From the NCBI GenBank assembly GCA_002269645.1, contig NIVC01002858.1:70729-134728 (forward strand): DNA of 64,000 nucleotides, given 5' to 3'. Below the pieces are notes generated by a model, which worked only from the letters and a program-made list of their open reading frames with translations, was not told the origin of the DNA and searched no databases. The position numbers and the translations under genes were made by a program. Below, in pieces: positions 40,209 through 54,564 of the stretch. Each line of letters opens with the position of its first letter. Position 1 is the stretch's first letter. The DNA is from Macrostomum lignano. Its lineage: Eukaryota.

Positions 40209-40859
40209 ATGTCGGCCGCTTCCCGCGATTTGCAGCTGCGAAGCGGACAGGCCAGTCGGACCTCAGCCTTGGCGATGCAGTCTCTTCCCAATAGGTTCGA
40301 TCGCTTCGGCATTATTCCCATTGCGGCGCCAAAGAAGCCGTCCAGACCGCGGGTTCCTCAACCGTCCCACCCGTCGCCCAGAGCCGCCCCGACCTCGCCT
40401 CTGCCACTGGCTCAGCCGGTGAGGCGACGGTCCAGCTTGGACCAGTCGCGGCCTGAACGACCTTTGTCGGCTCAAAAGTACAATGTACTGCCGGATATTG
40501 CGCAACAGAAAGAACAAAACATTCATAGAGAGCAGCACCCAACATCGCACGAAAAACAAGCGCAGAAACAATTAGCTAGCAAGCAAGAGCAGTTGCTTTA
40601 CCTGGCGATTCGAACTCCAGACGGTGCGCGTCGTCAGTGCAGCTATTCGTCCGACACGCAGCTGGGCGTCCTCTGTCGGGACGTGCGCAGCGGCGAGAGA
40701 GCTGACTCTGCAAAGCTGAGCTTGAGTAGCGAACCGCTGGAGGTTGTGTCACCAGCGGACAGGGTCACATTTGGTGAAGCTGACATGACAAAGACTTTGC
40801 AACAATTGGGCATTACCGATCGCTCATTGTTGGTTCTGCAGCGGACCGCGTTTGACTAA
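40209..40859 (+). CDS. UBXN10: UBX-domain protein 10-like (p97/VCP adaptor, ciliogenesis), single coding exon, 216 aa
   Basis: Pro/Ser-rich N-terminus, KYNVLPDI motif (compare KYPVLPSI), C-terminal UBX fold LYLAIRTPDGARR...DMTKTLQQLGITDRSLL. Confidence 0.78.
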   Translation: MSAASRDLQLRSGQASRTSALAMQSLPNRFDRFGIIPIAAPKKPSRPRVPQPSHPSPRAAPTSPLPLAQPVRRRSSLDQSRPERPLSAQKYNVLPDIAQQKEQNIHREQHPTSHEKQAQKQLASKQEQLLYLAIRTPDGARRQCSYSSDTQLGVLCRDVRSGERADSAKLSLSSEPLEVVSPADRVTFGEADMTKTLQQLGITDRSLLVLQRTAFD

Positions 40860-44886: not shown

Positions 44887-46559
44887 TTTCAAGGTGATTT
44901 TTGTCAACAGATCCAGTTTTTCTTGTCAGGCAAACAGCTCAAAACCGACACCCAGGCCATTTTAAAGACATTGTAAGACATATTTTGAACAACCAATCAT
45001 CTTAGACATAGAAAAAGTGTTTAGTTTTATTATTTCTGAATTTGACTGTCTACTTTCAGTAGAACACCGGCAGTTTGGTGCTGTTTTTGGATAGATTGAT
45101 AGATCTCCCGAATCTGTGCATTCAATAGTGTGTAGTGCATGCGCCCTTGTCAGTTGGCAGGGCGCGTTGCACTTTGGGGCTGGTTGGGGGGGTTGGCGGG
45201 CGTGGCAGGGTATGGCCGCCGGCCGGGCTTTGCGCGTGCCCCTCCCCAGCCGTGCCCCTGCCCCGTGCTCAGGGCTGGTTGGCTGCGGCCGGGCCAGCTT
45301 TGGCGCGGGTGCAGCCCCTCCCCCCTTAGGCGGGGTTTTGATTGGCTGGGCCGGCGTGGTTTGTTTTGGTGAGCTTAGCCGGTGGGGCCATCGGCCCCAG
45401 GGTTTGGGTATTATTTAATGCGGCTCTAGGCCTTGCTCACGCCCTTCTCTCTGTTTCTCGGTTTCTCTGTTTCTCTGTTAGTCCTGTTTGTGCTATTTTG
45501 TGTTTTGTGTGCTCCGTGGTTGCAAGCGTGAGACTTTGCTTAAGTAAGAAACAGCGACATTAGCTACCTACGATAAAACAAACCCGAGAGCTCAATTGAG
45601 AAGTTAGTCTTTAAAAAGAATCTTGGAGAATTGAGAAGAAGTTAGAAGCCGCGTTTGACACCTACGAGCCAATCAACAAACGTGCGAACCTGCGAACCTG
45701 CGCTTGAGACCTACGAGCAATAAACGGTGAACAGTCATTTGGCCACTGGTAAGCCGCCGGCTGTTTGAGTCCTTTCTTTTCGGGAAGCTTGCTAGGCTGA
45801 GTTCTTGCCAGAGCGTCATAACGCCGGGAGATCATATAGCTTTTGTAGTACTGTACCGTTTACCCTATATATTGCGTACACCCTACGGTATAGAGACTAG
45901 AAGCACTCGAGAGTGTCACCACATCTCGAGCCGCAGCGTGAACTCTGAGTGTCACAACACCAGAGGGATCGAACTATTATCGCAGAGCGTCGTCACGCCT
46001 GCTCGTCGTATTCATAAAAGTACAGACAGAGCGTCACAACGCCTGTTATATCACATATAATATATATTGTACTCGGGACTGGGCACCCAAACCGACCCGG
46101 GTTACAACAAGTGTACTAACGAGTGCCTGCTTAAGATACTCAAGCAGAGTCTGGCTGCTAACTCTAATAGAGTTGAGCGTCACATGCAACAGCAGCTTAC
46201 ACAGGTTCTGTAACCCGCCTATATTCACGCAGGGTGTGGACGAATAACCTGTGAGAATTAGGCTCAAGTAAAAGCTCAACAGCTGCAGAGTTTAACATTT
46301 CGCGCTAATTGTCGAACCATCAGTCACTTGTACTTTTATTTTATCACTGCTTGCACTCAGACTCAGAGGAAGGGTCAGAGACTATAAAGCAAGCATGCAC
46401 TGTACATGCAGGGACGAACTGCAGCGTCTATGGCTAAACACTTCTGCTGCATAAAAAGACGCGAGGCTCGACTGCGGCTCCCAGCTCAACTTTTGACAAA
46501 CCAAGGACCCATTCAATACTTAATAAAGAAGTTCGATATAGCAAAATAAATCCTGCATC

Positions 46560-49500
46560 ATGCTGTGCTCAGCACTGACTCTGATAATCCTTGTGACTGC
46601 TCAGGAATTCTACGAAGCCAAAGGTAAGAGATTTGGTGTCTCAGAATTGACCTGTGATTGTGTGATGTCGCGACTTCTCAGGCATATTTTTAATTCACCT
46701 TCACTTGTCTCAGCTTGCTCTGTTTTCTCTCCCGTCTGTCTTGTTCAGTCTTGTTATTTTCTCTCTTTCCCTCGCTGCCCTCTGATTGGCTCATTGCTCT
46801 CGCCTTCCTCTCGTCGCGAACTATTACGTGTGCTAATGCTGAGCAGTCTGCAAAAGTGACCTGTGATTGTGTGCTATTGGCACTGGCATCCCTCTGTTTT
46901 CTCGCCCTCTGTGTTTCTCTCCCTCTGTTTTCTCTCCCTCTGTTTTCTCTTTCTCTCCCTCTGTTTTCTCTTTCTCTCCCTCTGTTTTCTCTTTCTCTCC
47001 CTCTGTTTTCTCTCCCTCTGTTTTCTCTCCCTCTGTTTTCTCTCCCTCTGTTTTCTCTTTCTCTCCCTCTGTTTTCTCTTTCTCTCCCTCTGTTTTCTCT
47101 CCCTCTGTTTTCTCTCCCTCTGTTTTCTCTCCCTCTGTTTTCTCTTTCTCTCCCTCTGTTTTCTCTCCCTCTGTTTTCTCTCCCTCTGTTTTCTCGCCCT
47201 CTTCTGTTTTCTCTCCCTCTGTTTTCTCGCCCTCTTCTGTTTTCTCTCCCTCTGTTTTCTCTCCCTCTGTTTTCTCTCCCTCTGTTTTCTCGCCCTCTTC
47301 TGTTTTCTCTCCCTCTGTTTTCTCTCCCTCTGTTTTCTCTCCCTCTGTTTTCTCTCCCTCTGTTTTCTCTTTCTCTCCCTCTGTTTTCTCTTTCTCTCCC
47401 TCTGTTTTCTCTCCCTCTGTTTTCTCTTTCTCTCCCTCTGTTTTCTCTCCCTCTGTTTTCTCTCCCTCTGTTTTCTCGCCCTCTGTTTTCTCGCCCTCTT
47501 CTGTTTTCTCTCCCTCTGTTTTCTCTCCCTCTGTTTTCTCTCCCTCTGTTTTCTCTCCCTCTGTTTTCACGCCCTTTTCTGTTTTCTCTCCCTCTGTTTT
47601 CTCTCCCTCTGTTTTCTCTTTCTCTCCCTCTGTTTTCTCTCCCTCTGTTTTCTCTCCCTCTGTTTTCTCTCCCTCTGTTTTCGCTTTCCCTCTCTCGCTG
47701 CCCTCTAACTGGCTCTTGATCCCGCCCTTTTCTCGTCGCGGACTATACATGTGTTACGAATGATTCTGAGCAGTCTGCAAAACCGACCTGTGAAGTCATA
47801 AGCTTATAAAACACTATCACAACCTGTGAATTTCAGGTTCACCCATAAATCTGGAGCCCATGATTCCCGGTAAGTCTTGCTGGCTCTGCTGCAACATTCA
47901 CATTCTTAGCTTAACCTTTGTCCTGTCACTGTCTGCTTTTAATTCAAGCGCCTTCGAAGGGATGCCACCAATGGAGCCCGAAGGACGCCCTTCTCGACAT
48001 GGAGGTTAAAGAAGACTTCGACCGCATGAGCCAAGGAGTCTGCGCTACTCACTGCTTGATGCGCAAAAAGAAATACTTTGGCCTGGCTGATGGTCGACGG
48101 TGCTTCTGTGGAGATCAAATCGATAGCAAAACAATTGTTCCCAAGTTGGACTGCAACGTTCCATGTTTCAATTTTTCTGACGTTGAAAAGTGCGGCGGTA
48201 GTTCTGCCATGGAAGTATTCGATCTGGTGCCGGTTCCGAAAAACCACTCCGGCCAAAGCGCTCTGGATGTCTACGAACCTGAAGGTGAGAAATTTAAGTG
48301 CATCAGAATCGACCTTTTATCGTGTGCTAATATTGAGCAGTCTGCAAAACCGACCTGTGATTGTGTGCAATAACTAATCAGTCTGCAAAACCAAACTGTG
48401 ATTGTGTGCAATAACTAATCAGTCTGCAAAACTGACCTGTGATTGTGTGCAATAACTAATCAGTCTACAAAACCGACCTGTCATTGTGTGCAATAACTAA
48501 TCAGTCTTAGGAATGATGAGTCTGTCACATTATGAAGACTATTCAAGATTCTTTTATTTGTCAAGCTCAAATGTTCTGTAGCCAGCTAGTGAACTTTTAT
48601 TGACAAAATATTGAACTTTTTCAAAGCTTACAACAGTTTGTGAAGAGCTTGTAAGACTAAGAGCTAATGGTATAGTTGTCATATAAAACGCCATAAAAAC
48701 CTCATGAATTTCAGGTGCACCCATCGATATGCAGCCAATGATTCCCGGTAAGTCTTGCTAGCTCTGCTTCATCATTCGCATTCCTTTTTTTGCCTAACTT
48801 TCGTCCATTTTTCATTTAAGCGCCTTCAAAGGGATGCTACGTTTGGGGGAATCATTATTACGTTCTTGATAGAGAGATCAAAGAAGACTTCAAATACATG
48901 AGCCAACGAGTCTGCGCCTCTCACTGCTTGATGGAATTAGGATCTAAATACTTTGGCCTGGCTGATGGTAGACTGTGCTTCTGTGGAAATAAAATCCATA
49001 GCAAAATAATTGTTCCCAAGTTGGACTGCAACGTTCCATGTTTCAATTTTTCTGACGTTGAAAAGTGCGGCGGTAGTTCTGCCATGGAAGTATTCGATCT
49101 GGTGCCGGTTCCGAAAAACCACTCCGGCCAAAGCGCTCTGGATGTCTACGAACCTGAAGGTGAGAAATTTAAGTGCATCAGAATCGACCTTTTATCGTGT
49201 GCTAATATTGAGCAGTCTGCAAAACCGACCTGTGATTGTGTGCAATAACTAATCAGTCTGCAAAACCAAACTGTGATTGTGTGCAATAACTAATCAGTCT
49301 GCAAAACTGACCTGTGATTGTGTGCAATAACTAATCAGTCTGCAAAACCGACCTGTGATTGTGTGCAATAACTAATCAGTCTGCAAAACCGACCTGTGAT
49401 TGTGTGCAATAACTAATCAGTCTGCAAAACCAAACTGTGATTGTGTGCAATAACTAATCAGTCTGCAAAACCGACCTGTGATTGTGTGCAATAACTAATC

Positions 49501-52500
49501 AGTCTGCAAAACCGACCTGTGATTGTGTGCAATAACTAATCAGTCTGCAAAACCGACCTGTCATTGTGTGCAATAACTAATCAGTCTACAAAACCGACCT
49601 GTCATTGTGTGCAATAACTAATCAGTCTGCAAAACCGACCTGTGATTGTGTGCAATAACTAATCAGTCTGCAAAACCGACCTGTCATTGTGTGCAATAAC
49701 TAATCAGTCTGCAAAACCGACCTGTCATTGTGTGCAATAACTAATCAGTCTACAAAACCGACCTGTCATTGTGTGCAATAACTAATCAGTCTGCAAAACC
49801 GACCTGTGATTGTGTGCAATAACTAATCAGTCTGCAAAACCGACCTGTGATTGTGTGCAATAACTAATCAGTCTGCAAAACCGACCTGTGATTGTGTGCA
49901 ATAACTAATCAGTCTGCAAAACCGACCTGTCATTGTGTGCAATAACTAATCAGTCTGCAAAACCGACCTGTCATTGTGTGCAATAACTAATCAGTCTACA
50001 AAACCGACCTGTCATTGTGTGCAATAACTAATCAGTCTGCAAAACCGACCTGTGATTGTGTGCAATAACTAATCAGTCTGCAAAACCGACCTGTCATTGT
50101 GTGCAATAACTAATCAGTCTGCAAAACCGACCTGTGATTGTGTGCAATAACTAATCAGTCTACAAAACCGACCTGTCATTGTGTGCAATAACTAATCAGT
50201 CTGCAAAACCGACCTGTGATTGTGTGCAATAACTAATCAGTCTGCAAAACTGACCTGTGAATGTGTGCAATAACTAATCAGTCTACAAAGCCGACCTGTC
50301 ATTGTGTGCAATAACTAATCAGTCTTAGGAATGATGAGTCTGTCACATTATGAAGACTATTCAAGATTCCTTTATTTGTCAAGCTCAAATGTTCTGTAGC
50401 CAGCTAGTGAACTTTTATTGACAAAATATTGAACTTTTTCAAAGCTTACAACAGTTTGTGAAGAGCTTGTAAGACTAAGAGCTAATGGTATAGTTGTCAT
50501 ATAAAACGCCATAAAAACCTCATGAATTTCAGGTGCACCCATCGATATGCAGCCAATGATTCCCGGTAAGTCTTGCTAGCTCTGCTTCATCATTCGCATT
50601 CCTTTTTTTGCCTAACTTTCGTCCATTTTTCATTTAAGCGCCTTCGAAGGGATGCTACCATTGGGGAATCATTATTCCGTTCTTAGTAGAGAGATCAAAG
50701 AAGACTTCAAATACATGAGCCAACGAGTCTGCGCCTCTCACTGCTTGATGGAATTAGGATCTAAATACTTTGGCCTGGCTGATGGTAGACTGTGCCTCTG
50801 TGGAAATAAAATCCATAGCAAAACAATTGTTCCCAAGTTGGACTGCAAAGCTTCATGTTTCAACTATTTGTATCATAAAAAGTGCGGCGGTAGGGGCGCA
50901 ATAGAAGTATTCGATCTGAAGCCGGTACCGAAAATCTACTCCGGCCAAAGCGCTCTGGATGTCTACGAACCTGAAGGTGAGAAATTTAAGTGCATCAGAA
51001 TCGACCTGTTATCGTGTGCTAATATTGAGCAGTCTGCAAAACCGACCTGTGATTGTGTGCAATAACTAATCAGTCTGCAAAACCGACCTGTAATTGTGTG
51101 CAATAACTAATCAGTCTGCAAAACTGACCTGTGATTGTGTGCAATAACTAATCAGTCTGCAAAACCGACCTGTGATTGTGTGCAATAACTAATCAGTCTG
51201 CAAAACCGACCTGTGATTGTGTGCAATAACTAATCAGTCTGCAAAACCGACCTGTCATTGTGTGCAATAACTAATCAGTCTGCAAAACCGACCTGTGATT
51301 GTGTGCAATAACTAATCAGTCTGCAAAACTGACCTGTGAATGTGTGCAATAACTAATCAGTCTGCAAAACCGACCTGTGCTTGTGTGCAATAACTAATCA
51401 GTCTGCAAAACCGACCTGTGAATGTGTGCAATAACTAATCAGTCTGCAAAACCGACCTGTCATTGTGTGCAATAACTAATCAGTCTGCAAAACTGACCTG
51501 TCATTGTGTGCAATAACTAATCAGTCTGCAAAACCGACCTGTAATTGTGTGCAATAACTAATCAGTCTGAAAAACCGACCTGTGAATGTGTGCAATAAGT
51601 AATCAGTCTACAAAACCGACCTGTCATTGTGTGCAATAACTAATCAGTCTTAGGAATGATGAGTCTGTCACATTATGAAGACTATTCAAGATACTTTTAT
51701 TTGTCAAGCTCAAATGTTCTGTAGCCAGCTAGTGAACTTTTATTGACAAAATATTAAACTTTTTCAAAGCTTACAACAGTTTGTGAAGAGCTTGTAAAGA
51801 TTAAGAGCTAATGGTATAGTTGTCATATAAAACGCCATAAAAACCTCATGAATTTCAGGTGCACCCATCGATATGCAGCCAATGATTCCCGGTAAGTCTT
51901 GCTAGCTCTGCTTCATCATTCGCATTCCTTTTTTTGCCTAACTTTCGTCCATTTTTCATTTAAGCGCCTTCGAAGGGATGCTACCATTGGGGGAATGGTT
52001 ATTCCGTTCTTACTAGAGAGATCAAAGAAGACTTCAAATACATGAGCCAACGAGTCTGCGCCTCTCACTGCTTGATGGAAACAAGATGGAAATACTTTGG
52101 CCTGGCTGATGGTAGACGGTGCCTCTGTGGAAATAAAATCCAATCACAAATTATTCCCAAGTATTACTGCAACGCTTCATGTTTCAACTATTTGTATCAT
52201 AAAAAATGCGGCGGTAGGGGCGCAATAGAAGTATTCGATCTGAAGCCGGTACCGAAAATCTACTCCGGCCAAAGCGCTCTGGATGTCTACGAACCTGAAG
52301 GTGAGAAATTTAAGTGCATCAAAATCGACCTGTTATCGTGTGCTAATATTGAGCAGTCTGCAAAACCGACCTGTGATTGTGTGCAATAACTAATCAGTCT
52401 GCAAAACCAAACTGTGATTGTGTGCAATAACTAATCAGTCTGCAAAACCAAACTGTGATTGTGTGCAATAACTAATCAGTCTGCAAAACCAAACTGTGAT

Positions 52501-53285
52501 TGTGTGCAATAACTAATCAGTCTGCAAAACCAAACTGTGATTGTGTGCAATAACTAATCAGTCTGCAAAACCGACCTGTCATTGTGTGCAATAACTGAGC
52601 AGCCTCCTAAATTGAGTTGAGATTGTTTGCAATTATACAAACAAAAATAGTTTGCCACATTATGCAGGCTATTCACGCGTTGCTTTTTCAAGCTCAAAGT
52701 GTACGGAAAAGTGTATGAACTTTTATTGATTGTCTTCAAAACAAGATTGTCTTTCGGGGCAATAAAACAACAACTTTTTACAATCTGAAAATTTCAGCTT
52801 GTGAATATAGTATACTATTGAGCTCAAGAACGCCATCATAACCTGTAAATTTCAGGTGCACCCATCGATATGCAGCCCATGATTCCCGGTAAGTCTTGCT
52901 GGCTCTGCCTCATCATTCGCATTCTTTTACTTAACTTTCGTTCCATTTTTTTCAAGCGCCTTCGAAAGGATGCTACCTTTGGTACCTGAATGGAGATCAT
53001 AGAGATTTTGCTTTAAAATATGAAGTTGACGAAGACTTCAAATACATGAGCCAACGAGTCTGCGCCACTCACTGCTTGATGGAAAAAACTTGGAAATACT
53101 TTGGCCTGTTTGATGGTAGACGGTGCTTCTGTGGAGATGAAATCAGGTCCCGAAATGTTCTCAATTTGATATGCAACGTTCAATGTTACAACTATTTGTA
53201 TGGTGAAAAGTGCGGCGGTAGGGACGCAATGGAGATATTCGATCTGGTTCCGGTTCCGAAGAACTACTCTGGCGAAACTGCCTGA
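46560..53285 (+). CDS. Secreted multi-WSC-domain (putative carbohydrate-binding) protein with five tandem cassettes, about 635 aa if cassette 3 is frame-corrected
   Basis: Signal-peptide exon 46560-46623 (MLCSALTLIILVTAQ). 33-nt micro-exons at 47837-47869, 48715-48747, 50533-50565, 51859-51891 and 52856-52888. WSC exons at 47949-48284, 48821-49159, 50639-50976 (1-nt short), 51965-52300 and 52957-53285 (stop). All introns are phase 1. WSC pattern GC..MS..C..HC..KYFGL..G..CFCG..C..PC..KCGG..A.EVF. Confidence 0.85.
46890..47690. repeat. Polypyrimidine 15-bp array CTCTCCCTCTGTTTT in WSC-gene intron 1
   Basis: Flanked by a ~110-bp imperfect direct repeat (about 46760-46870 and 47680-47790). Confidence 0.97.
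48335..52598. repeat. Four arrays of a 41-bp unit TGTGCAATAACTAATCAGTCTGCAAAACCGACCTGTGATTG (about 48335-48505, 49210-50325, 51025-51648, 52350-52598)
   Basis: One array follows each internal WSC exon; copy number differs strongly between cassettes. Confidence 0.97.
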
Positions 53286-53889
53286 CTGATGAAAGCTGCT
53301 GAATTGGATGCTTGAACAGAAACTGTCGTTAAACATCTGTTTAAATGCAAAATATAAACAATTGCAATGTTTCAAACAACTCTTATTTTACTGACTTTAT
53401 CTAAAAACGGCACCAACTGCTGACTGACCCAAACCCTGATTTAACCATAGACTTAACCCTAAACCTAACCCTAATCAGAACCTGACCCTAACTCAATCCA
53501 ACCTAACCTTACTGTATCCAATCAGATGCTCCTATTTAATCGTTACTCGCATTATTTAGCTCACCTGCAAGTAAGGTTTTTTGATAGAATTGATAAATTT
53601 AAAGCGCTAATTTGTCTAAACTTCAATGTGGTACGATACCACCTGAATGTCTCTGGATTGGGTTTCTAGACAGGGTGTCTGGACATAGACCTCCCGACAC
53701 AGGTCTCTGACAGAGGTCTCCAGACAGAGTGAATTTAGTAACTGTAACTAACTAGCAATCTTCGCCCTCCCGATGGGGACATCTGGATAGAATCCTTGCT
53801 CTTTACAAATAACAAATAGACAGCGAAATAAAGCCTTCATAAAAAACAACAGACATTCCCTCTAAAAACAAAACATCCAAAGACAGCAT

Positions 53890-54355
53890 TCAAGCATCGA
53901 TCCCCAAATAGCAAGCATCCCCCAGACTGCAAGCATCCCCCAGATAGCAAGCACCCCCCCAGATAGCAAGCAACCCCAGGATAGCAAGCATCCCCCCAGA
54001 TAGCAAGCAACCCCAGGATAGCAAGCATCCCCCAGATAGCAAGCAACCCCCAGATAGCTAGCATAACCTGGATACAAAGAGACTTTATAGATATCTAGCA
54101 ACCCCCTCTCAGATAGCAAGTACCCTCCACCCCCCAAGAGCAAGCATCTTCCAATAGCAAGTTACCCCAGTAGCAAGCATCCTTCCGATAGCAAGCAACC
54201 CTCAGATAGCAAGCATCCCTCAGATAGCAAGCATCCCTCAGATAGCAAGCATCCCTCAGATAGCAAGCATCCCTCAGATAGCAAGCATCCCTCAGATAGC
54301 AATCATCCCCCTGATAGCAAGAAACCATCCTTAAATAGCAAGCATCCACCAGAGA
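53890..54355. repeat. About 18-19-bp minisatellite GATAGCAAGCATCCCTCA
   Basis: Intergenic tandem array. Confidence 0.92.
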
Positions 54356-54564
54356 ACAAGTAGCTAGTGCAACAATTTCCTTAGCTTTATAGGCTCCATT
54401 TTGTTTGGCATGACACTTCTTTTTATGTTTGAAACGGTGTCTCTTTTATGTTTGAAATGATAGCTCTTTTATGTTTGGCATGGTGGCTCTTTTATGTTTG
54501 ACATGGTGGCTCTTTTATGTTTAGCATTTTGTGTTTTTAAGGTGTTTTAATAAAAAAATTATTT

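Follow-up and report, generated by a model that had tools for sequence, protein, structure and literature searches.

The structure of yeast Wsc1 provides the hallmarks of the WSC domain, eight conserved cysteines forming four disulfides and a CGG motif (PMC9024836). In the flatworm Macrostomum lignano, proteins with WSC domains or WSCD2 homology have been described from the prostate gland and among seminal-fluid candidates. RNA815_80.4 has two WSC domains and is specific to the prostate gland, and its knock-down abolishes antibody staining of the prostate (PMC4490696). Mlig-pro46 is reported to be WSCD2-like; its knock-down lowered the competitive ability of sperm, and WSCD2 homology is also stated for several other seminal-fluid candidates (PMC6953679). 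Many WSC-annotated entries are also found in the table of top BLAST hits from a prostate in situ screen (PMC5977470 Table S1). SiWSC3, a protein with three WSC domains, binds long beta-1,3-glucan only (PMC7816849), and this need for long ligands fits multivalent binding. Here we analyze BOX15_Mlig022635g2, a gene encoding a tandem array of WSC domains at positions 46560-53285 of a 64,000-nt stretch of M. lignano DNA (the window). The window forms the end of contig NIVC01002858.1 (GCA_002269645.1), and the locus examined (L003) is placed in it at 40652-63285. The gene is already annotated but unstudied, and belongs, as an uncharacterized member, to a known domain family that has undergone lineage-specific expansion.

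A tandem WSC gene in three genomic copies

A protein search returned BOX15_Mlig009486g1, whose 90% protein cluster also contains BOX15_Mlig022635g1 (PAA87879.1, 635 aa) and BOX15_Mlig022635g2 (PAA54807.1, 351 aa). The gene carries the GenBank label of a hypothetical or WSC domain-containing protein, and PAA54807.1 is encoded exactly by the window, starting from an internal ATG at 50652. The window region 46560-53285 is one of three near-identical copies of this gene in M. lignano, the others being Mlig022635g1 (locus L002) and Mlig009486g1 (locus L001). Apart from one G-run in unit 3, the exons of the window and L002 copies show no mismatches over 1907 nt, and their non-satellite introns differ at 3 of 1666 bases. 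The flanks of the three copies are 94-99% identical, which fits the block duplication reported for the DV1 line: the assembly paper describes 180 Mb of blocks duplicated at an identity of at least 95%, as expected from the DV1 karyotype (PMC5730564).

In the window, the gene model comprises 11 exons on the forward strand (Table 1) and was obtained by reading positions 46000-54000 and finding the repeated exon signatures by pattern. The ten introns are all of the GT-AG type, with phase 1 at each junction. Acceptors (…TTTCAG, …TTTAAG) and donors (GTAAGT, GTGAGA) hardly vary across units, the short intron within each unit measures 68-79 nt, and the long introns between units span 430-1373 nt. Of the ten unit exons, nine measure 33, 336 or 339 nt or are terminal, the exception being exon 7, the WSC exon of unit 3, with 338 nt. 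The signal exon is the same in PAA87879.1 of the sister copy L002 and in the one-unit paralogue Mlig018627g1, and a tblastn search found no further WSC exons or second array elsewhere in the 64-kb window. The GenBank Mlig_3_7 annotation was RNA-guided, using StringTie/TACO and de novo transcripts (PMC5730564); the 11-exon structure including the micro-exons therefore has transcript support via the intact copy.

When scanned singly, units 1, 2, 4, and 5 match the Pfam WSC family (PF01822) with 40-50 bits (E 3.6e-13 to 4.5e-10), compared to a gathering cut-off of 27.8 bits. With one G restored in unit 3, the whole protein scores 170 bits (E 1.3e-50) in five matched stretches, unit 3 included. 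Exactly eight cysteines and a single CGG motif are found in every unit, and the cysteine columns are invariant in the alignment. The nearest solved structures by sequence are yeast Wsc1 (7PZ2, E 4.9e-07) and then human Kremen1 (5FWS, E 6.3e-05), giving indirect support for a PAN/Apple-like fold wrapped by a long L5 loop. In the leader (MLCSALTLIILVTAQ…), the hydrophobic core, ALTLIILV, reaches a 9-residue Kyte-Doolittle mean of up to 2.78, and V-T-A occupies positions -3 to -1 relative to the putative cleavage site. The rest of the protein lacks a further hydrophobic segment (highest 19-residue mean 0.62), and N-X-S/T sequons are present in four of the five units. The product of the frame with one G restored is a protein of ~70 kDa with a signal-peptide-like leader, five tandem WSC domains, and proline-rich linkers, and the leader, the sequons, and the absence of a later hydrophobic segment predict the make-up of a secreted glycoprotein.

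The original prediction for this locus, which was made from the sequence without database searches, had described a signal exon followed by five units of a 33-nt micro-exon and a WSC exon, all in phase 1, encoding a secreted array of WSC domains. The layout of signal exon, units, and phase agrees with our model. The domain assignment is confirmed by the PF01822 scan, for units 1, 2, 4, and 5 singly and for all five stretches in the restored protein, and the leader with its V-T-A motif and the absence of a later hydrophobic segment point to a protein of the secreted type. The statement that all internal units are multiples of three does not hold for the 338-nt WSC exon of unit 3, and the proposed retention of the frame by any subset of cassettes extends past unit 3 as assembled only if this exon is skipped or one G is restored.

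Table 1. Exons, intronic repeats, and the copy-specific insertion of the WSC gene in the window, followed by the three genomic copies of the gene
Feature	Position in window or contig	Strand	Description
Exon 1	46560-46623	+	64 nt; ATG and signal-peptide-like leader MLCSALTLIILVTAQEFYEAK plus first base of next codon; ends in phase 1
Micro-exon 1	47837-47869	+	33 nt; phase 1-1; linker GSPINLEPMIP
WSC exon 1	47949-48284	+	336 nt; phase 1-1; 8 Cys and CGG motif
Micro-exon 2	48715-48747	+	33 nt; GAPIDMQPMIP
WSC exon 2	48821-49159	+	339 nt; phase 1-1
Micro-exon 3	50533-50565	+	33 nt
WSC exon 3	50639-50976	+	338 nt as assembled; frame-breaking
Micro-exon 4	51859-51891	+	33 nt
WSC exon 4	51965-52300	+	336 nt; phase 1-1
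Micro-exon 5	52856-52888	+	33 nt
WSC exon 5	52957-53285	+	329 nt (326 nt plus TGA stop); most divergent unit; lacks the C-terminal linker tail
15-nt CT-rich microsatellite	46889-47682		~51 copies; inside intron 1 (46624-47836)
41-nt minisatellite	48338-48507		4 copies; unit 1-unit 2 intron
41-nt minisatellite	49213-50325		27 copies; unit 2-unit 3 intron; 93 copies at the same place in L002
41-nt minisatellite	51002-51650		~15-16 copies; unit 3-unit 4 intron
41-nt minisatellite	52354-52599		6 copies; unit 4-unit 5 intron
Copy-specific insertion	45105-46148		~1.04 kb; 0.4 kb upstream of the ATG; missing from both sister copies (L001, L002)
Window copy (Mlig022635g2)	NIVC01002858.1		5 units; unit-3 WSC exon 338 nt; 41-mer copies per long intron 4/27/15/6
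L002 copy (Mlig022635g1)	NIVC01000212.1		5 units; unit-3 WSC exon 339 nt; 41-mer copies per long intron 4/93/11/5
L001 copy (Mlig009486g1, PAA91241.1)	NIVC01000093.1		6 units; unit-3 WSC exon 335 nt; 41-mer copies per long intron 9/21/21/21/10

Array growth, paralogues, and genomic surroundings

Alignment of all eleven WSC exons shows that several units are mosaics. The 3' half of unit 1 is that of unit 2, unit 3 of the window combines a unit-2-like 5' and middle part with a unit-4-like 3' part, and units 3 and 4 of L001 combine other segments. Such mosaics are what unequal crossing-over and gene conversion leave behind. Positions 9886-13016 of L001 contain two consecutive units of 1565 and 1566 bp, each consisting of micro-exon, WSC exon, and an intron with 21 minisatellite copies. 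Apart from the length of a G-run, no difference separates these two units (3 and 4) over 1565 nt, of which 861 nt are hypervariable minisatellite. We interpret the extra unit of L001 as a very recent tandem duplication of its neighbor, an assembly artefact being the less likely origin. The ratio of nonsynonymous to synonymous substitution rates (dN/dS) reaches high values of 0.5-1.1 between units and 2.1 for units 3 vs. 4, the latter value being based on few changes. The units diverge mainly in loops, and the cysteine scaffold is invariant.

The long introns carry a 41-nt minisatellite that ranges from 4 to 93 copies per intron among the three genomic copies. Within the window, it was not found outside the four long introns of this gene, and it is also missing from the locus of the paralogue Mlig010030g1 (L006). 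A genome-wide repeat or mobile element was considered as its nature; the repeat is confined to this gene in the window and absent from L006. The idea that each 41-mer forms a decoy splice unit, with CAG and GTGATT 16 nt apart, was rejected as it appears sterically implausible. In intron 1 (46770-47795), the CT-rich array is flanked by two stretches of ~100 nt that look alike by eye, each ending in one degenerate copy of the 41-nt repeat, which hints at homology between intron 1 and the introns that separate the units.

The array has thus probably grown, and probably still changes, by tandem duplication, unequal crossing-over, and gene conversion of a module of two exons, processes to which the observed pattern of duplicates and mosaics points. 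The hypervariable minisatellite in the long introns would offer extra homology for misalignment, and the phase-1 symmetry would let module duplications stay in frame, such that the symmetry is probably seen here because it is needed for in-frame duplication. According to Patthy's class 1-1 rule, symmetric phase-1 modules in extracellular animal proteins are explained by in-frame tandem exon duplication. The gene is a neat but unexceptional example of exon duplication along textbook lines; it illustrates this well-known rule and as yet adds nothing to it.

An exhaustive HMMER search retrieved 1096 proteins at E <=0.001, many of them with several WSC stretches. In a word-indexed homologue search with one unit as query, only two M. 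lignano models were found, too few for a deep alignment. Among ten relatives that were looked up, those with more than ~40% identity are all M. lignano paralogues; among the rest are a protein of Diplonema with 18 WSC stretches, a fungal N-acetylglucosamine (GlcNAc)-transferase, and a crinoid protein. The paralogue Mlig018627g1 (PAA81925.1) has the same signal exon, one 33-nt micro-exon, and a single WSC exon. Mlig010030g1 (PAA84335.1) consists of a phase-1 signal exon and three repeats of a 42-nt micro-exon plus a WSC exon, all in phase 1, and its linker GAKVYPVIP is recognizably homologous to GAPIDMQPMIP. Mlig005509g3, a more distant paralogue, carries a single WSC domain in each phase-1 exon and lacks the micro-exon. 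The arrangement of one WSC domain to each symmetric phase-1 exon thus holds across this expansion, a subfamily of which is marked by the linker micro-exon, and arrays of 1, 3, 5, and 6 units exist. With its perfect 1.6-kb duplicate, mosaic units, hypervariable minisatellite, and paralogues with 1, 3, 5, and 6 modules, the family could reveal how secreted proteins rapidly alter their number of binding domains.

Several further observations concern the paralogues and their location. Given the annotated protein of Mlig010030g1, the donor after each of its WSC exons reads G/GCAAGT (L006 10577, 11461, and 12299), and GC-AG introns appear to be repeated in all three units. In L005 (NIVC01000507.1, 2143-14454), Mlig018627g1 adjoins another WSC gene (131 aa) and a gene with a CAP/CRISP domain (PF00188), and four other WSC paralogues (PAA91528, PAA91566, PAA91578, and PAA91580) are located on one 1.12-Mb contig. 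With neighboring WSC genes on shared contigs, the WSC family is therefore partly clustered in the genome.

Within the window, large minus-strand fragments of open reading frames at 454-23000 match Dynein_C, AAA_lid_11, AAA_7, Dynein_AAA_lid, AAA_6, and DHC_N2, and this order of dynein heavy-chain domains is that expected for one minus-strand gene. The guanine-cytosine (GC) content of this region is 0.53-0.65 vs. ~0.41 in the WSC gene. An intronless 216-aa open reading frame with a UBX domain (E 1.1e-05) lies on the plus strand at 40209-40859; each of the three copies has it called as a gene, placed upstream of the WSC gene (L001 458-1108, L002 4973-5623). The insertion at 45105-46148 has a GC-rich first part and short internal direct repeats. 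Just 3' of the stop codon, a degenerate telomere-like run (…AACCCTAAACCTAACCCTAATC…) occupies 53430-53500, and the 3' flank further contains ~24 copies of an 18-nt minisatellite (CCCCAGATAGCAAGCATC, 53902-54353), followed by two 23-nt repeats (54402-54527).

The frameshift in unit 3 and the question of cassette splicing

The G-run at 50663-50666 (+) reads GGGG in the window, and the homologous run is GGGGG in units 2 and 4 and in unit 3 of L002. The k-mers ACCATTGGGGAATCATTATTCC (GGGG context) and ACCATTGGGGGAATCATTATTCC cover this run, in a context specific to unit 3 of the Mlig022635 copies. As assembled, the full-length frame meets a stop 20 codons into the unit-3 WSC exon, and the product of the frameshifted exon 7 ends in …SKKTSNT (…GCYHWGIIIPFLVERSKKTSNT*). 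Restoring one G yields an open frame of 635 codons, the 635-aa product of which is identical to PAA87879.1 of the sister copy, and skipping unit 3 leaves an open frame of 511 aa. In L001, the unit-3 WSC exon is shortened to 335 nt at the same G-run, such that the third unit is the indel site in both affected copies, two of the three. The Mlig022635g2 model is truncated to 351 aa because of this indel; as a practical consequence, two of the three GenBank models of the gene are truncated at an internal ATG, probably through homopolymer errors in the assembly.

We consider the 338-nt exon to be probably an uncorrected PacBio/Canu homopolymer error and not biology. GCA_002269645.1 is a PacBio/Canu assembly polished with short reads, and residual homopolymer indels are a typical error of such assemblies. 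Here, an error may have been left uncorrected because short reads from near-identical copies would map preferentially to the error-free copy. Alternatively, the window copy might be a young pseudogene, a redundant duplicate with a real 1-nt deletion and perhaps a damaging 1-kb insertion near its promoter, while the intact Mlig022635g1 provides the function. The stop after …SKKTSNT, the insertion upstream of the ATG that is specific to this copy, and the extensive redundancy expected in the DV1 line would fit this scenario. However, the copy has no other lesion: there are no exon substitutions relative to the intact copy, no splice site is damaged, and the frame of the units further downstream is open. 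The lesion lies within a G5 homopolymer, where polishing reads would favor the error-free copy, and the same kind of indel is all that separates the two otherwise perfect tandem duplicates of L001. A pseudogene is thus an unlikely, though not far-fetched, explanation of the frameshift compared to an assembly error.

Regulated cassette splicing, in which in-frame skipping of units or lone micro-exons would yield isoforms that differ in valence, was central to the original prediction, and in its strong form the frameshifted third cassette would be real and skipped to make the full-length protein. Skipping would be frame-neutral, as all internal exons except the 338-nt one are symmetric (phase 1-1), loss of unit 3 restores an open frame, and the indel affects the third unit in two of the three copies. 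Some models also differ from the 11-exon structure: the older-annotation models P0005 (between two units of this gene) and P0173 (the one-unit paralogue) lack a micro-exon, and in P0007 (an older UniRef model, unit 5) and P0010 (GenBank, one-unit paralogue) an in-frame internal acceptor would remove Cys1. These acceptors (window 52957-53025 for P0007 and L005 8412-8465 for P0010) lie 69 and 54 nt inside the WSC exon. However, all four models are predictions, and 33-nt exons are often overlooked by ab initio predictors; the models offer leads and not data on alternative splicing. The RNA-guided GenBank model of the intact copy contains all 11 exons, the 90% protein cluster holds no cassette-skipped GenBank isoform, and the ten splice-site pairs are nearly identical between units, without a distinction between weak and strong sites. 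In addition, the indel looks like a consensus error, and the symmetry is explained by the duplication origin of the units; phase 1-1 symmetry is necessary for frame-neutral skipping but not sufficient to show it. Regulated skipping therefore appears quite doubtful. A scenario is very improbable in which two of the three copies carry a genuine GGGG allele, the third cassette has to be skipped for a full-length protein, and the valence of a seminal-fluid lectin is tuned both by obligatory or regulated skipping and by fast, recombination-driven change in unit number in an array with minisatellite-filled introns. If true, the gene would be a small-scale analogue, under sexual selection, of variable-repeat recognition proteins.

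The claims of the original prediction on variability consequently fare differently. Cassette splicing finds no backing in an RNA-guided annotation that is all-inclusive only and in a cluster without skipped isoforms, and the symmetry on which it was built is expected from exon duplication. Change in copy number, in contrast, is observed, with five vs. six units between genomic copies and paralogues with one and three. The remark that no described animal family has this layout needs revision: the gene is annotated, secreted WSC proteins have been documented in M. lignano, and multi-WSC arrays are widespread in eukaryotes.

Putative function and relation to known systems

We propose that the protein may act as a multivalent, glycan-binding, lectin-like gland secretion, with glycan binding predicted from its domains. 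Judging from other secreted WSC proteins of M. lignano, prostate and seminal fluid would be the leading candidate site. As a different possibility, the WSC domains might not be lectins and might instead serve protein-protein recognition, similar to the Kremen-Dickkopf-LRP6 system, or contribute to a matrix with a structural or adhesive role. Among solved structures, Kremen1 is the second-closest relative, and the high dN/dS values between units would fit rapidly co-evolving protein interfaces. Furthermore, the WSC domains of Wsc1 and Krm1 have no obvious ligand pocket (PMC9024836). On the other hand, SiWSC3, the sole biochemically characterized free multi-WSC protein, is a glucan lectin that needs long ligands (PMC7816849). 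The units of the flatworm protein also have aromatic-rich surfaces, with 9-17 aromatic residues each. Such surfaces are typical of carbohydrate binding, and we regard a non-lectin role as unlikely.

Overall, a glycan-binding gland lectin, encoded by an already annotated gene copy with a five-WSC secreted product, a duplication-built array, and a frameshift due to assembly error, is in our judgment the probable explanation of the locus as a whole. Several points weigh against it. The third-unit frameshift occurs in two of the three copies, and a real shared lesion is possible; likewise, an assembly artefact might conceivably account for the sixth unit of L001. The AlphaFold2 model from a 5-sequence alignment was unusable (predicted local distance difference test, pLDDT, 41.6), and the fold is predicted from sequence. 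The WSC domain of Kremen is found within a protein-protein complex, and no ligand for any animal multi-WSC protein was found in the literature. Expression records for Mlig022635, Mlig009486, and Mlig018627 are absent from the full texts searched and from the supplementary files that accompany Weber 2018, Patlar 2019, Wudarski 2017, and Brand 2020. The gene could also not be equated with Mlig-pro46, Mlig-pro63, or RNA815_80.4, as the published primers match no copy with up to 3 mismatches, and the probe fragment of RNA815_80.4 is only ~30% identical, which makes it a distant paralogue.

RNA815_7102 and RNA815_15432 were also considered as candidates for this gene. They share with it the top BLAST hit CDZ98531, the best named non-flatworm match here, and no identity is claimed. 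M. lignano serves as a model in studies of sexual selection and of how seminal fluid functions, and RNA interference and transgenesis work in it, making the gene experimentally approachable.

Compared to its closest relatives in the genome, the window gene shares the module of a phase-1 linker micro-exon and a one-domain WSC exon with Mlig022635g1, Mlig009486g1, Mlig018627g1, and Mlig010030g1, which differ in their number of units (5, 6, 1, and 3, respectively). The 41-nt intronic minisatellite is found in the Mlig022635/009486 gene only, and Mlig010030g1 has 42-nt instead of 33-nt micro-exons. RNA815_80.4 (Arbore 2015, PMC4490696) comes from the same species and likewise combines a signal-peptide-like leader with WSC domains, but it is a separate gene with two such domains vs. 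five here and ~30% identity. Mlig-pro46 (Patlar 2019, PMC6953679), also from M. lignano and WSCD2-like, is a different gene as judged by primer mismatch. Both belong to the same rapidly evolving WSC expansion as the window gene.

Outside the flatworms, SiWSC3 of Serendipita indica (Wawra 2019, as cited in PMC7816849) is described there as a secreted protein of tandem WSC domains alone, similar to the protein studied here; it is fungal and has three domains, and such proteins are ~25-34% identical to the flatworm protein. Yeast Wsc1, in its cysteine-rich domain (CRD; 7PZ2), and human Kremen1 (5FWS) share the eight-cysteine framework and the CGG motif, but in these membrane receptors the WSC domain is single, without a tandem array or linker micro-exons. 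Finally, class 1-1 exon-shuffled mosaic proteins resemble the window gene in their phase-1 signal exon, one domain per symmetric phase-1 exon, and tandem exon duplication, whereas here a separate 33-nt linker micro-exon accompanies each domain exon.

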